Origin: Styela clava
Lineage: Eukaryota
Direction of reading: 5' to 3'
NCBI RefSeq assembly: GCF_964204865.1
Contig: NC_135258.1
Span: 12,586,001 to 12,650,000 of the forward strand
DNA length: 64,000 bases
Below, piece by piece: positions 53,647 to 64,000 of this stretch. A program made the translations under genes and the position numbers. How positions within the stretch are numbered: the stretch's first letter is position 1; every line of letters begins with the position of its first letter. The notes beneath the pieces are model-generated. The model was not told the origin of the DNA, searched no databases, and was given only the letters and a program-made list of their open reading frames with translations.

Positions 53647-55313
53647 TCCGTGATACACAGCTGAACACCAACGTGTTTTTCTCGTTATAGAGATTTATAC
53701 ATATTATGAGTCGATCAAAAATTATCATTATAATTCATGCATCGAGAGCTATTCATATATGTACTATTAATATTTGAACGCGCTGCAATGCAGTTTTCAA
53801 ATGAGCAAAATATGTCGCACCTAATACAGCATGTTGATGTATATCACTTTTTTAAGTAAAATAACTCGCCCTTTGTGTACAATTTGTAAACATGCACTTT
53901 TTAAATCAAAATATGAAATAATATAATTATTACAGCCATAATAGCGTAATAATCTTACTTGTAATACCATTAACCGTGTTATTAATTGTTGTTATAATAA
54001 TTGATTTTTGTGTTATAATTTTATGTTAATTAGTTTCATAATTAACAGAAAACATTTTGAGATATTTTTTGTGTTGTTTCATTATTTTTGGGGTTATCCG
54101 TAACATAAGAAAAATTTGTCTTTTTTACCTGCCTGACAGATGCGAATGAAATAATTGGGATTGATAAAACGGTATGTTTTGTAGAATTAGAGAGCATCGA
54201 CCAACTGCGTCTTTGAGCGCCAGAAAATTAGGAATACCTACGTAGTTTAAATAGCTTCTCATGAAATAAATCAGAAAAATCGTTGACATATTGTTGGTAT
54301 ATCACTACTGTGACTGAATTGAATAGTATGATGGCTAGCTGAAGCAACTAGCGAAGTTGAAGATATGATGGGCAGTCTAAATTGTTACCTGGATTTCTAT
54401 CGTTTTGGTCGGGAATTCGTATATGCTTACAACATAGGCAACATGATAGAATACTAAACATCGGATGCGGATTCCATTAGTCTAGGTTGACAATACCAGA
54501 TAACCAAGTGTTTACACAATAGAAGTGCTTGTTTTGTATTGCACTGTTTACCTATTCTTGGTACTATTGTGGCCCGCGGAGCCCACAACTTTGGACCACC
54601 CTGCTCTATTGTATTGGTTCTTTACCAGGAGTTCGGCGGAAGTCCTCTGAAATGTTTGACATATTGTTCTGCGACAGGTACCAATTCCACTAATGAATTG
54701 TCGGATTTGAAATTTTAGCATTTCTTTGCTTGATTTTGACGATTTAATTTATTATTCTGCTTCTTGCCTACATCTTGAGGCTGAATTTGTCAGACGGTGC
54801 ATCACACTGAGCTGAACGGGTTGGTAATACTTGAACCGGGTGATGGCCATATTTCGTAAAATAAGATTGACATGTTATCATCTTTCGACTCCCGAAGATA
54901 AATGTAAAAATCCACCGACTGCGAGTGATTGTTCATTCAATGACAATCGATTTTTGAATAGCTGGATTATTAGCGCGGCTTTCGCGCGCAGTATTATTTC
55001 ATTTCTCGTGCTCACAACACTAAATTAGCCCAATTAAACCACTTTGATTGACTCCTCTATTAGCAAGCCATTCACAACTGTGCATGTGACATATGTGCTA
55101 TTTTAATTTGCTGTCACCTCGTGTAGAATAGGTGTCAATATGCTATTAGGAATATACTTACTCCATTGCACTGATGGGCATAAAATCCTCATTTAAACCA
55201 ATGACTAACATACCGTCTAAGTTTTTTAGACTTACAAAACAAAAAACCGGAGCTATGCGGATTGTACAAATCTTGGTTCGATTCTGAGGCTTAGTAATAT
55301 CCAGCTCATTAGT

Positions 55314-55612
55314 TATCGATCTTACGATCGGTAAGTATGTTGATAGGTATTTGTCTGTTTGTTTGTTTGTCTGTTAGATGCACGCGATATCTCACGATAG
55401 CGAGGTTGAATCTTCTCCAAATTTTGCATGTGCATTCATCATAGCTCGGATCAGAAGCCTATTGATTTTTGATAAATTATGTCGTATAATTAGCGAGTTA
55501 TTAATTAATTAGTGATGGGACACACGGTGTCACTATGGAGTAAGAACGCTGTTTTGGGGGATCCCCTAACCGACGATCGATAACTCTTCGGTCTCCGACC
55601 GATATTCTCGTA
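55314..55612 (+). mobile_element. Helentron/HINE-like element, copy 2
   Basis: Highly similar to 12531-12820. Confidence 0.65.
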
Positions 55613-55784
55613 TAAATATTATTACTATTCAAGCCACCGGAGAACGTGCACTTTCTTTTTACTTCTGTAACATTGGCTAAAATCAGCAAGATATAATGGT
55701 GACGTTAATAATTTATAAGCCCTCAGACAACTTTTCCCCAAATTTATATTCAGAAAAGATTCCCACGAAGATATTTACAGGCAT

Positions 55785-58376: not shown

Positions 58377-60518
58377 ATGGATGTTTCACAGCATATTCTA
58401 GAAAATGAAACTGAGGTTTGCCACCTTGATTGTGTCACAGCATTTAAAGCTTTGAGCAAGAGTGAAAAATTGTATTCACATTATTTGGGAAAAGCATCAT
58501 TCTATGGTGGACTGATTGTCCTGCACCAAACTTCTCCCGAGTCACCAAAAATATTTTGTCTTTTGATGAAAATATTTTCAAAGCAGAGTGCAGAAGCAAT
58601 TGCAAAAATTGCTGTTGAACAATGTGGATTTTCAGCAGAAGATGTAACAGCATTCAATGTTTACATTGCTGGGTTTCTGGCAAACATGGGAAACTATAAA
58701 GGATTTGGTGACACAAAGTTCATCCCTGGAGTTCCTCAGGAGAAGTTCATGAAGTTGGTCATGTGTACAGATGCATATCGTCAAGAACCGGAGCTCATTG
58801 AGTCCTTGATGCAAGCATGTGCTGAAGGAACTTATTCTCTGAATGAGAACAACAAACAACTGGGTTTAAAGGGGAATGGAATCACAGCGTATTTCTCACT
58901 CAATTGCGACAAAGCTGATGCTGAAATGATACAAAAATTTCTGGATGCAAAATCTATAAGTGCCTATAACACTAGACTATTTAAGAAAGAGTTGGATGAT
59001 GGAAAGTACAAGTATGAAGTCAGGCTCGCATCAGTTTCTAAAACTGATGATAGTGGTGATAAACTTCCTTATTTAGGTGACCATGAATTTGAAGGTCACT
59101 CAATCACAGTTCAACGTGGGGATTATAGTGTTTTGATGAAAAAAGTGGTAGAAAATTTGGAAAAGGCGAAAGCTAATGCTCTTAATGAAAATGAAGCCTC
59201 TATGATTAAGGAATACATTCGTTCTTTCACAAGTGGTGATCTCGAAGCACATAAAGAAGGTTCCCGATTTTGGATCCGAGACCAAGGACCTATTGTAGAA
59301 TCTTATATAGGGTTCATTGAGTCATACAGGGATCCTTTTGGAACAAGAGGTGAATTTGAAGGATTTGTTGCTGTTGTCAACAAAGAAATGAGCAAAAAAT
59401 TTGCAAATCTTGTTGCATCATCTGATACACTCCTGAAACATTTGCCATGGCCTAAGGATTATGAGAAAGATACATTTTTGCGTCCAGATTTTACATCTCT
59501 TGATGTTCTTGCTTTTGCTGGCAGTGGTATTCCTGCTGGTATCAATATACCAAACTATGATGACATTCGTCAGTCGGAAGGATTCAAGAATGTATCACTT
59601 GGTAATGTGTTATCTGCAGCGTATTCTGTAGGAAAAAAAGTATGGTTTCTTTCCGATGAAGACCAGGCTATGTTCAAGGATTACAAAAGTAAATCTTTTG
59701 AGGTTCAAGTTGGATTGCATGAGTTGTTAGGACACGGCAGTGGGAAATTGTTCAGCACAAAAGAAGATGGAACCATGAATTTTGATAAAGAAAAAGTCAT
59801 CAATCCATTGACAAATAAATTAGTCAAAAAATGGTACAAATCTGGTGAAACGTGGGATAGCAAATTTGTTGAACTTTCCTCACCATATGAGGAATGTAGG
59901 GCAGAATGTGTGGGATTATACCTGTGCCTCAACAGGGATGCACTCAAGATTTTTGGACATGAAGGACAATCTGCCGATGATATCATTTATGTCAATTGGC
60001 TAAATATGGTTTGGGCAGGAGTTCAAGGCCTTCTGTACTACACTCCAGAAAATAAAACATGGAGGCAAGCTCATATGCAAGCAAGATATGTCATTCTCAG
60101 AGTTTTGATGGAGGCTGGTATTGTGACTGTTATGCACACTACATGCAAAGATGACGGAAAGCCAGATGCTCTTATCACTCTTGATCGTTCACTCATAGAG
60201 ACCAAAGGTCAAAAAGCAATTGGTGATTTCTTGTGCAAACTGCAAGTCTACAAATCGCACGGCGATTGTGAGACTGCCAGAGTTATGTGGCAGAATTATG
60301 CAACTGTGGGATCTGACATACAACCCGACATGTTAAAATTGAGACAGACCGTCATCTTACGACGTCAACCAAGAAAGTTATTTGTTCAAGATAACACCAT
60401 TAATAAAAGTGAAGAAATTAATTTGGTTTCTTATCCTGCCACCCATTCAGGCCTGATAGATTCGTTTGCAGATAGATTCAGAGATGATGACATTTATGAA
60501 TTGTTGAAAAACTGTTAA
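58377..60518 (+). CDS. DPP3: Dipeptidyl peptidase III (M49), uninterrupted ORF; possible N-terminal extension from 58253
   Basis: HELLGH zinc motif, EECRAE, SYIGFIESYRDPFG, GIPAGINIPNYDDIRQ; ATG at 58377 aligns with the usual DPP3 start. Confidence 0.95.
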   Translation: MDVSQHILENETEVCHLDCVTAFKALSKSEKLYSHYLGKASFYGGLIVLHQTSPESPKIFCLLMKIFSKQSAEAIAKIAVEQCGFSAEDVTAFNVYIAGFLANMGNYKGFGDTKFIPGVPQEKFMKLVMCTDAYRQEPELIESLMQACAEGTYSLNENNKQLGLKGNGITAYFSLNCDKADAEMIQKFLDAKSISAYNTRLFKKELDDGKYKYEVRLASVSKTDDSGDKLPYLGDHEFEGHSITVQRGDYSVLMKKVVENLEKAKANALNENEASMIKEYIRSFTSGDLEAHKEGSRFWIRDQGPIVESYIGFIESYRDPFGTRGEFEGFVAVVNKEMSKKFANLVASSDTLLKHLPWPKDYEKDTFLRPDFTSLDVLAFAGSGIPAGINIPNYDDIRQSEGFKNVSLGNVLSAAYSVGKKVWFLSDEDQAMFKDYKSKSFEVQVGLHELLGHGSGKLFSTKEDGTMNFDKEKVINPLTNKLVKKWYKSGETWDSKFVELSSPYEECRAECVGLYLCLNRDALKIFGHEGQSADDIIYVNWLNMVWAGVQGLLYYTPENKTWRQAHMQARYVILRVLMEAGIVTVMHTTCKDDGKPDALITLDRSLIETKGQKAIGDFLCKLQVYKSHGDCETARVMWQNYATVGSDIQPDMLKLRQTVILRRQPRKLFVQDNTINKSEEINLVSYPATHSGLIDSFADRFRDDDIYELLKNC

Positions 60519-61852
60519 CATTTAGCAAGCAACTTATCATCCTGACAGTTCAAGCTGACAATGATGCATTGGTATTGGGAAGCCTTAGTTAAGTAGTTTC
60601 CCTCTTTTTTTGGTGCATTCTTTAACCTATTTTTCAAACTCTTCATTCCTCCCCACTATATATAAAAAGTTTTGTTTGAATTTGTTATTCAATCTTGAAT
60701 AGAACATTTGCTTGTGATATGTGCAACTAGCCTTCTGTACAGTTTAAACATATGCATATCTATGTTTCACAATAATACTACATGCAAATATAGAGTAATA
60801 TTTAAATTCCTGCTTGGAGAGGAATAGGGAAACATTGGCCCTAAAGAATCTAAATTTTTCGCTACATGATTCAATGGCAGTATCATGTCAATTACTTGCC
60901 ATCAAAATAACATTTCAATACTACAAGAACCATTATAACTATTAATTGGGAACCCAATTTATGTGTCAAACATTTCAAGCTAGCATTCCTAATGAATGAC
61001 AAAATCTGTTTTTTGCTTGATCAAATAAACCAAATGATTGAACGAATGAATATTTCGTATCTGTTGTTGATCATGAAGGTTTGAGGGTATACCTGTTTAG
61101 GTTCCTAACATTCTTCAAAAATATTGTGGGTCTTGTACTCTTGTCACAGCAGTTCAGTGAATTATTTTATTAGCTCATATTCTGATTGAACCGCCTAGAT
61201 AGGACTTTTAAAACTGTCTCTATCGAATAGGACGAAGAGCATGTTCTCTCATCTGATCAACTGTCCAGATTTTGTATTGTTGACCAGCCGAAAATTCATG
61301 AATTGTGCAGCAAGAAATTGTGAGATTATTTTAACATTTGATGATAATATCCCATCGGGTGGGTGGGTACACTTTCGTATAGTGTCATCCTAGTGAACAG
61401 ATATAAATCTGATTGCTCGAAACTTTAGAACACAATCATGAGCGAAACTTATTCAACTGAAAGTTGGTGAACCCCCCCCATAGCTCGTCAGTTATTAATC
61501 CAAACTAGAAAAAACATGGAACTCTCTCACCCAGTTAACCATAATTTCTAGGAAAATGCTGCAAGCTATATGGCTACGCCTCATCAGGAATAAAGGCCAA
61601 TGCAACTCTTGAACACCGCAGCTACCGTAAAGCTACATGCACTGTCTATCTGCTCAAGAGGAAGTAGTCCCAGTGATTATAACCAGATTTATACTGCAAA
61701 AATTTAATTATGAATACTGAAAATGGCTATCAAAAAAAGCACCAGCTTTATAAGCAGTGAAAAGTTGATCAACTTCATGTAAATTGTTTACAGATTATGA
61801 TTGAAAAAAATTGTGAGAGATAGCAGTGCAGGTGGCATAAGCAATTTGCTGG

Positions 61853-62044
61853 TCATAGCTCATCATGATTTTGTTCCTTGCCTTCTGGACGTTTGAATGC
61901 TCCAAGCTGATACATGACACCACTTTTCATGTTTTTGATCAGGAAGATGAAAGGATGATCCGCATAAAACATAATTCTTTTGTCAGCAGGTGTACGGTTG
62001 GCTTCTTCGCGCTCTGCCTGAACCAATCCCCCTAGAGGATTCAC
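61853..62044 (-). CDS. Serpin alternative RCL/C-terminal exon B (non-inhibitory, HSP47-like, HDEL)
   Basis: Acceptor ATTCAG|GTG in phase 0 with the donor after ..HKGVLE; encodes VNPLGGLVQAEREEANRTPADKRIMFYADHPFIFLIKNMKSGVMYQLGAFKRPEGKEQNHDEL*. Confidence 0.85.
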   Translation of the reverse strand: MNPLGGLVQAEREEANRTPADKRIMFYADHPFIFLIKNMKSGVMYQLGAFKRPEGKEQNHDEL

Positions 62045-62099
62045 CTGAATTACCATAAGTAAAATATTACTATTTTAATATCACCAGCATACCTGTATC

Positions 62100-64000
62100 C
62101 TACAGTTCTTGATGACTCATTTCTGTGCCTTCAGGTCGTACAAACCGGCCCAGAAAGAGTATCTGGCGAATTTTGTTGTGATGTATCATCCATATGAATG
62201 GATGATCAGCAAAATATCTGATGGCAAGATCAAGTGAGCGTGCCATAATCCGGACAGTGGTGGCCGCAGCCGCCGTGCTGCCCTCTTCAGTAACCTGATG
62301 GAAATTGTATAAGATTCACTAGTATTCAATAATATTCTCCTAAACTGAAAAAATGTCAAACTTGCCTCTAGTACACCTTTGTGAAAAATGGCATCAACGA
62401 AGAGTGATTTGTCACCACTTATTCCAGATAGGTCTGCTTGGCCGGATGAAAATATATCTTTGATTCCCAGGTTTTGCAATGATTTTTGAAGTTCAATGCC
62501 AGCCTCCACTTTAAATTTTGGTAATGTGATCTAAAATCAACACAATCATGAACTGATTTAATCGAGATTTCAGTAAAGATGTAATTCCTGCATAGCGATG
62601 AAGGTTGTAACCCACATAATCGTGTATATATTTAAGCATTTGAAATAAAATCGTGTTTTTCTATACTTTAACGAATATAATTGAATTACTCAGTATTGTC
62701 ATAACCAACCCAACTGATGACCATAAGACAGACTTGATTAAAAATTCATATTTAAATAGATTTGATCATGTACATTATTTGAAGAAATTGAGACTTACGT
62801 CAACAGTTTCGTATTCCATGTTGGAAATCCAATTGGTAAGGTTCTCATAGTTTAAGTTCTTCTCAACAGATGCAAGATCAAAATTGTCCGGCAGGAAAAG
62901 ATACATGCTGATATCTTGGCCAACGTAAGGCAATTCCAAAACCTGAAGATTCAATGATTCAATATACCGAAAACGAAACTTTCCTGTAAAAATTAGAAAT
63001 AAGAATTACTTAAAATTTACATTATGTATACAATACTTATTTCCTAAATTGGTTTAAAAAAATGAAACGCTTCTCTCGCTCACCTCGTTGATACATGAAG
63101 TGAGTATTGATAACTCTGTAATGAGACACATAAAATGCTCTTTCATCAGTGTGCATTGGTGAAAAGCCAGAGTGCCATTCACCAGTAAAATAAAGGGTGT
63201 TGACAAGGACCAAAGCAGTTGTCGCATCTAGATCGTCATCGTTGAGCATATTTGGAATGAGGTCGCCAGTTTCTTGAGAGATCCATTTATTAATGTGAGA
63301 TACAGATGTCTTGTCCCCAAAATCCAACTGTAAAAAGAATTAAGTCTAATTATTATATGAACACTCTCATATTAGCATGCAATGTAAGTTTATATACACA
63401 CATCTTCAATTTTCGCTCCAAACACTGAGAGAGCATTTCTATAGTCATTCAACACACTGGCAGTCTTTGAAATGAATGCTCCATTCGCACCTTTCAGGGT
63501 GATGTTGTCTTTAGGCTACAAAAAAAGTTTGGCATAAAAAACATACATAAGTAAAAACCCATAAAATGAAATGTGTATATTTTTTGATTCTGAGAATTGT
63601 ATGAAAATATTAATATAGTCTAAGATTACCTTGTCAAAAAGAAGTCCATTCAGTTCACCAAATGCTGAATTGATTAGTGATGCTTCAACATCTTTTAAAT
63701 GAAGGGCTTCTGCAATTTGTTTAGTGGAATTTTCTTTCGTTCCTAACTTCACCATTGCCAAAGCTGTTAAATAGTGCAATTTCATTACAAGTCATAATAT
63801 TACCATTTTCAATAATTTCGTAAGGGATTGCAACATCTTTAAAAAATGAAAGCGATATTATTGCTTATAATATCATTATACTCTTATACAAGATAGACAA
63901 ACCTGCTGAGACGCTGACTGGAGAGAATACCACATTTACTGTTTTGGGTTGTGCAATAATTTCCCTGTAGAGATCCACAGCGAACTTCGAATTTGCTGCT
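62100..64000 (-). CDS. Serpin isoform A (inhibitory RCL, C-terminal HQEL); 5' end beyond window; exons >64000-63903, 63763-63630, 63515-63402, 63327-63084, 62983-62799, 62530-62366, 62294-62100
   Basis: Serpin motifs NVVFSPVSV, INKWISQET..IPNML, LVLVNTLYFTGEW, QVLELPY, ITLPKFK, ADLSGIS. Last coding exon: VTEEGSTAAAATTVRIMARSLDLAIRYFADHPFIWMIHHNKIRQILFLGRFVRPEGTEMSHQEL*. Confidence 0.9.

Follow-up and report, generated by a model that had tools for sequence, protein, structure and literature searches.

A group-U6 serpin gene of Styela clava with two alternative reactive-centre-loop exons, probably one inhibitory and one non-inhibitory

We analysed a 64,000-nucleotide stretch of the Styela clava genome (contig NC_135258.1, positions 12,586,001 to 12,650,000; hereafter the window) and focused on a minus-strand serpin gene, in which exon 6, through a phase-0 GC donor, would be joined to either of two C-terminal exons, A or B. 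The best explanation, which we consider likely, is that the gene is a group-U6 serpin and the counterpart of Ciona Ci-Spn-10, with exon A providing a protease inhibitor and exon B a non-inhibitory form of the endoplasmic reticulum (ER). The exon pair is old and already known, and this locus adds a species to it. The interest of the locus lies in the second exon, which is kept across distant ascidians and in a paralog that has no functional exon A, and which departs from the hinge rule of inhibitory serpins.

Two alternative ends of one serpin gene

Direct reading and translation revealed a hydrophobic, signal-like N-terminal peptide and six introns, and bore out in every detail the sequence-only reading that a single gene carries two tandem phase-0 exons, A and B, after the exon ending at 62366. 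The exons were searched one by one, with full-length database orthologues serving as proxies for the joined protein. Exons 4, 5, 6 and A matched positions 117-370 of the Pfam family PF00079 (Serpin) in order, with E values between 1e-10 and 1e-20. The exon-6 donor is GC and not GT (GAG/GCAAGT, 62365-62364), which makes the following intron GC-AG; the same donor is GC in the paralog, and no other donor both preserves the frame and produces the ..HK.VLE/V.. junction of the orthologous proteins. The predicted products, e6-A and e6-B, are 412 and 411 amino acids (aa) long. The two exons stand in tandem, have the same acceptor phase and each run from the reactive-centre loop (RCL) to their own stop, as in RCL-cassette serpins, and both carry tails of the ER-retrieval type as originally described, HQEL in A and HDEL in B.

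Inhibitory serpins have a hinge with Glu at P17, Gly at P15, Thr or Ser at P14 and small residues from P12 to P9, and the even-numbered hinge residues must be buried in sheet A during inhibition. The hinge of exon A, EEGSTAAAATT, follows this rule (E-E-G-S-T-A-A-A-A, P17 to P9), and counting from P17 Glu places Arg-Ser at P1-P1', in agreement with the view of exon A as a textbook Arg-Ser inhibitor. The exon continues with ..TVRIMAR-SLD.., ..FADHPFIW.. and RPEG before its tail, and the Pfam Serpin profile aligned to it from the hinge onward (E 1.5e-10, profile positions 317-370). An alignment of orthologues indicated that the A-type loop ..VR[IV].AR-S.. is kept among ascidians, and this conserved loop points to a conserved Arg-specific target protease. 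The e6-A product would be a conventional suicide inhibitor of such a protease, kept in the early secretory pathway by HQEL; with both a signal peptide and this tail, it should act there. A furin-type target is unsupported. Furin inhibitors carry basic residues in a P4/P2/P1 pattern, and the A loop differs in having Arg at P5 and P1, not at P4 and P1.

The hinge of exon B reads PLGGLVQAEREEANR. The exon encodes PLGGLVQAEREEANRTPADKR, then MFYADHPFIFL.., RPEG and HDEL, and includes an NRT sequon. With Pro at P17, Gly at P14, Val at P12, Gln at P11, Glu at P9 and Arg at P8, this hinge does not follow the inhibitory rule. Across nine B-type tunicate sequences P9 is always Glu and P8 always Arg, P12 can be Val, Ala or Arg, and some of the sequences have Glu at P10, which upholds the earlier claim that the exon-B hinge violates the rule. 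The elements GG, AER, YADHPF, KRP.G and HDEL are also invariant in these nine sequences, and the loop motif is GG.V.AER.EA. The Pfam Serpin profile matched exon B with an E value of 1.6e-4 and 21.5 bits, below the 27-bit cut-off, and covered residues 16-53 only (profile positions 333-370); since the alignment starts at residue 16, the B hinge is unlike a serpin hinge. When exon B alone was used as the query against a library of 1.8 billion proteins, it recovered tunicate B-type C-termini at E values of 1e-15 to 1e-7, and the B-type C-termini returned were from tunicate-like sequences only. These matches are far beyond chance.

Because charged or bulky residues occupy positions that would be buried in sheet A, inhibition by loop insertion is not expected under the hinge rule, and the second form very probably cannot inhibit. 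AlphaFold2 modelled the Clavelina B isoform as a confident native serpin (pLDDT 90.5), in which the AER.EA segment forms a short helix of lower confidence (pLDDT about 70). That a loop not expected to insert is so strongly conserved speaks for a role in binding. The e6-B product, with the same body as e6-A and the HDEL tail, would most likely bind something through its exposed loop together with the surface of sheet C, which exon B rebuilds. A conserved N-glycan in the B loop was considered and rejected; NRT occurs here and in both Ciona species, and the sequon is missing from four of the nine aligned B-type sequences. The B-type exon occurs at two places in the Styela clava genome, this locus and the paralog. 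No further RCL exons were found between exon B and the neighbouring dipeptidyl-peptidase III (DPP3) gene, nor elsewhere.

Ascidian counterparts and a dispersed paralog

Judged by its sequence, this gene corresponds to Ci-Spn-10, a group-U6 serpin of Ciona. The exon-B library search returned Ciona savignyi H2Z1K4, which is Cs-Spn-2, and H2Z1K4 used as a query gave further A/B pairs. The search of other tunicates that had been proposed for the same exon pair found both forms in entries of three species. The Ciona intestinalis 'leukocyte elastase inhibitor-like' protein has an X1 isoform of 408 aa with an A-type end and HDEF, and an X2 isoform of 407 aa with a B-type end and HDEL (RefSeq XP_002130997 and XP_009859361). 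The RefSeq isoforms of Clavelina lepadiformis comprise an A-type X1 with RDEL and a B-type X2 with HDEL (XP_076812981 and XP_076812982). The two Phallusia mammillata entries, CAB3265988 and CAB3265989, are the same up to ..HKAVLEV and then take an A-type or a B-type end. The Phallusia B-type entry also begins with a different 20-residue N-terminus that does not contain the signal peptide of the A-type entry; this may reflect the use of another first exon, or the model may be incomplete. Ciona shows a partition similar to that of the paralog described below: Ci-Spn-9 has an A-type end, and Cs-Spn-2 is represented in the databases by one entry, of the B type.

Exon A is 52-59% identical to the A-type C-termini of Ciona, Clavelina and Phallusia and exon B 46-53% identical to their B-type C-termini, with about 50% identity to the same counterparts over the protein body. 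Based on the identities within each exon type, the A/B duplication is older than the split of Styela from these three genera.

Group U6 has been described as having six introns, ER signals and, in Ci-Spn-10, an A/B RCL exon that yields products of 408 and 407 aa (Kumar & Bhandari 2014, PMC4150122). The earlier remark that alternative-RCL serpins had been reported in Ciona was thus correct, and the exon switch is not new, since the pair has been published for Ciona and also appears in RefSeq annotation. The B-type loop of Cs-Spn-2 is quoted as GGDVLAERAEANRTP.., the same motif as in exon B, and the core introns of the group are given as 60a, 106c, 144c, 225a, 283c and 339a (PMC4150122). The introns of the Styela gene have phases 1, 0, 0, 1, 0 and 0, and five of the six fit group U6 if a stands for phase 1 and c for phase 0; the last is phase 0 where '339a' predicts phase 1. 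The intron after exon 4 interrupts the Gly codon of ..MYQR-G-KF.. and would be the equivalent of '225a', and exon lengths of 114 and 244 nucleotides (nt) agree with the published U6 intron spacing. The gene has U6 traits in its ER-retention-type tails, its A/B exon pair and its closest relatives, which are U6 members.

The likeness to Ci-Spn-10 comprises the signal peptide, the six core introns, the ER-type tail and one body with two alternative RCL exons, in addition to an A loop with Arg-Ser at P1-P1', a B loop of the form GG.V.AER.EA...YADHPF...HDEL and a B end one residue shorter than A. The differences are an identity of about 50%, that of a distant ascidian, the A tail (HQEL here, HDEF or RDEL elsewhere) and, in Styela clava, a second dispersed copy without a functional exon A. 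In PMC4150122 the P1-P1' of Ci-Spn-10B is given as P-L, as for an inhibitory serpin, with no discussion of its function. The Ciona serpin KH.C11.648 is up-regulated by the ER-stress factor Xbp1::VP16 (PMC8803312 supplement; PMC8495957). Another gene model, KH.C1.489, has automatically been labelled 'serpin H1'; either might be Ci-Spn-9 or Ci-Spn-10.

The second copy lies at C10:5.15 Mb, on the same contig, 7.4 Mb away, and is 93% identical. Its six body exons, its splice sites (GC donor included) and its exon B are all intact, and its exon A has a one-base insertion, leading through a +1 frameshift to TGA, and a 98-nt deletion that removes the 3' end and the stop. Over body and exon B the two copies differ with synonymous and non-synonymous divergences of dS 0.081 and dN 0.023 (dN/dS 0.28). 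Degradation of exon B in relatives had been named as a finding that would speak against the sequence-only reading; the opposite is seen, as exon B is kept where the paralog lost A. A haplotig origin of this 93% copy is ruled out by its position on the same contig 7.4 Mb apart, the broken DPP3 3' pieces beside it and kilobase insertions; since the duplicated block carries only broken 3' pieces of DPP3, the duplication is real and dispersed. Divergence within the duplicate is lowest in exon 6 (0.6%) and the GC-AG intron (1.4%), compared with 3-8% in the other introns, which could reflect gene conversion or splicing control.

Weighing the readings of exon B

Several points weigh against reading A as an inhibitor and B as a non-inhibitory ER form. 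We infer from sequence the use of both acceptors in Styela clava, and likewise ER residence, the loss of inhibition in B and any ligand; the RefSeq isoforms of other ascidians are model predictions, and the hinge rule is an empirical rule and not a measurement. The A tail varies among species (HQEL here, HDEF in Ciona, Phallusia and one fragment, RDEL in Clavelina), so retention of the A product may differ between them. With HDEL in all nine B exons and mixed A tails, the two isoforms may also be retained with unequal efficiency. The signal peptide of the paralog has a Gly-to-Glu change, and that copy may itself be decaying. Finally, a donor-like site past the A stop allows an e6-A-B transcript in which B would be 3' untranslated region (UTR).

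A more far-reaching reading, which we regard as unlikely but the best surviving of the alternatives, is that B chaperones collagen in the manner of HSP47, the U6 gene being an invertebrate-chordate forerunner or convergent analogue of SERPINH1. The s1C strand (MFYAD), with Arg, Thr, Tyr/Phe and Gln of the body, would then form a site for Gly-X-Arg collagen, and HDEL would retrieve the protein from the Golgi. When exon B was compared with all PDB sequences, HSP47 was the top match (30.3 bits, E 3.8e-6; the next at about 24 bits), and a four-species B-only profile gave HSP47 35 bits against 26 for the next. MFYADHPFIFL aligns with L381-F382-Y383-A384-D385 of HSP47; exon B reproduces the HSP47 strand that holds the collagen arginine. 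In addition, group U6 and the HSP47 group have intron 225a and an ER signal in common (Kumar & Bhandari, PMC4150122), and the Styela genome encodes fibrillar collagens with Gly-Pro-Arg sites, with no closer HSP47 homologue found in it.

We took the collagen contacts of HSP47 from PMC8301893, mapped them via an ungapped fish-to-dog HSP47 alignment, and compared eight database U6 proteins and this gene with 56 other serpins. The position of Arg222 is Arg here, in exon 4, and in seven of the eight database U6 proteins (Lys in one), compared with 3 of the 56 other serpins. The position of Tyr383 is Tyr in all B exons but in no A exon and in none of the 56. The position of Ser305 is Thr, Ser or Ala in U6 (Thr here) and Ser or Thr in 14 of 56 others, and that of Leu381 is Met here, Leu, Leu, Val and Thr in four database B proteins and Val, Ile, Leu or Phe in 13 of 56. 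Tyr245 corresponds to Tyr or Phe in U6 (Phe here), Gln254 to Gln in most U6 proteins, and Asp385 to Asp in U6 and also in 50 of the 56 others; Met271 and Phe382 correspond to Leu and Phe in the body and B end of this gene. Against this, Asp385, Phe382 and Gln254 are widespread among serpins, Manduca serpin 1K too has Arg at the 222 position, the His273/His274 pair is not retained (Asp-Asn in this gene), and the contact residues were picked after the match had been seen.

The remainder of the protein points elsewhere. By whole-protein similarity, U6 goes with SERPINB1 and antithrombin (36% identity) and less with HSP47 (29%), and the best vertebrate matches of the U6 protein were SERPINB1-like at 236 bits and HSP47 at 185 bits, so that HSP47 is not its reciprocal closest relative. 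A fold search with the predicted B isoform placed SERPINB1 and antithrombin first and HSP47 at rank 40, not set apart from other serpins, and in the exon 4 search HSP47 was outside the best 60 matches. Exon A matched the same C-terminal stretch of HSP47 nearly as well as exon B (29.4 bits vs 30.3), and A and B scored alike in BLAST against fish HSP47. HSP47 has been stated to be absent from invertebrates, urochordates included (PMC5583329). A complex prediction for the Clavelina B isoform with three copies of a collagen stretch, a 36-residue Gly-X-Y segment with GPPGPRG from a fibrillar collagen of this genome, scored 0.08 against a mark of 0.34 and gave no verdict either way. In the searchable literature on HSP47 with tunicate, Ciona or serpin, no paper was found that links the B form to HSP47 or calls it non-inhibitory.

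The HSP47-like C-terminus proposed for exon B is therefore real as a likeness, but it is local, confined to the C-terminal exon and some contact residues, with the body nearer SERPINB1 and antithrombin. The gene resembles HSP47/SERPINH1 as a predicted ER-resident serpin with an xDEL tail after RP.G, a hinge that by sequence is non-inhibitory (B only), an s1C strand [LM]FYADHPFIFL with the Tyr383 and Asp385 equivalents, body equivalents of Arg222 and Ser/Thr305, and intron 225a as reported in the literature. It differs in an overall identity of about 27-29%, a body nearer clade B and antithrombin and the missing His273/His274 pair, and the HSP47 gene contains three introns (192a, 225a, 300c) and only one type of C-terminal exon. 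That one U6 gene gives both a protease inhibitor of the ER and a chaperone that binds collagen as HSP47 does, with vertebrate HSP47 descending from or having converged on a B-type exon, is a speculation to which we give a minor chance. If true, the collagen chaperone would have originated before vertebrates, and a serpin inhibitor would have become a chaperone by duplication of an exon, not of a gene. Current descriptions treat HSP47 as a vertebrate invention, and this gene offers a way to ask how procollagen may be chaperoned in invertebrate chordates.

It is quite improbable that B is still a protease inhibitor, acting on another protease with an unusual hinge or by a non-inserting, tight-binding mechanism, in an ordinary specificity-swapping cassette. 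Gly at P15 and a small P14 Gly are kept, the loop length is one residue off that of A, and several species carry basic residues near the loop end (KR in Styela clava, DR or RK elsewhere); specificity swapping is moreover the norm for cassette serpins (PMC4006314). Yet these basic residues are not positionally conserved and are placed some four residues further along than the canonical distance to P1, the serpin profile gives no alignment to the B hinge, and the invariant Glu P9 and Arg P8, the Val, Ala or Arg at P12 and the Glu at P10 of some species clash with burial in sheet A.

That exon B (or A) is unused in this species, as a relic of an ancestral pair or as 3' UTR of an e6-A-B transcript, has very little to recommend it beyond the donor-like CAG/GTATGC between the A stop and the B acceptor: the B frame is intact with a good acceptor and an invariant HDEL, B differs from the paralog by two non-synonymous and three synonymous changes while the adjacent A-B spacer differs by 8%, the exon that decayed in the paralog is A, and both forms are present in three other ascidians.

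Gene features, comparable serpins and neighbouring loci

The features of the gene are listed in Table 1. All five exons upstream of exon 6 are bounded by canonical splice sites. The ATG of exon 1 lies 104 bases past the window end, at L001:3905. Within the A-B spacer, the donor-like CAG/GTATGC (exon end at 62093) lies 7 nt past the A stop and 48 nt before the B acceptor, and an ATTAAA is located at 62079-62074, both being consensus matches only. As the spacer holds a donor-like site and ATTAAA, A may end the transcript or may be a cassette that splicing joins to B.

Table 1. Exons and other elements of the Styela clava serpin gene (window positions)
Feature	Position	Strand	Description
Exon 1, in-window part	63903..64000	-	signal-like peptide and start of serpin core; next intron phase 1
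Exon 2	63630..63763	-	134 nt, flanked by AG and GT; next intron phase 0
Exon 3	63402..63515	-	114 nt; next intron phase 0
Exon 4	63084..63327	-	244 nt; Pfam Serpin profile positions 117-195; next intron phase 1
Exon 5	62799..62983	-	185 nt; Pfam Serpin profile positions 199-256; next intron phase 0
Exon 6	62366..62530	-	165 nt, end ..IFHKGVLE; common donor exon for A and B
Alternative exon A	62100..62294	-	64 aa and TAG; CAG acceptor, phase 0; s1C/s4B/s5B strands
A-B spacer	62045..62099	-	55 nt, A stop to B acceptor
Alternative exon B	61853..62044	-	63 aa and TGA; CAG acceptor, phase 0
ATTAAA, possible poly(A) signal	61703..61708	-	145 nt downstream of exon-B stop; consensus match only

Tandem alternative exons that run from the RCL through the C-terminus to their own stops are also found in Drosophila Spn42Da (Spn4) and Manduca sexta serpin-1, and the isoforms of Spn42Da, formed by alternative RCL exons, also differ in ER targeting (PMC4006314). 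The insect cassettes exchange inhibitory specificities, whereas in the tunicate gene there are two cassettes only, one of which breaks the hinge rule, and an ER tail is kept in both. Because their gene structures differ, we infer independent origins of the insect and tunicate cassettes. The A product resembles amphioxus Bl-Spn1 and the neuroserpin orthologues, inhibitory serpins with a C-terminal retrieval signal, in a study that does not cover tunicates (Kumar & Ragg 2008, PMC2556349). By analogy with such inhibitory serpins of the ER and secretory pathway, the A product is presumed to guard the secretory route.

The DPP3 gene (58380-60518, plus strand; Peptidase_M49, E 1e-229, HELLGH) is a single frame of about 712 aa and lies tail to tail with the serpin gene, an intronless gene beside an intron-rich one. 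The broken DPP3 3' pieces beside the serpin paralog are located at C10:5135835-5136423 and 5145378-5145924. Two interspersed repeats of about 300-340 bp occupy 54242-54610 and 55305-55633 of the window and recur dozens of times across many contigs at 88-94% identity. On contig C5, matches to the Serpin profile cluster at 12281130-12303292 and 14310612-14319484; the first cluster, of about 22 kb, looks like a tandem serpin gene array. In Ciona, Ci-Spn-5 adjoins valyl-tRNA synthetase.

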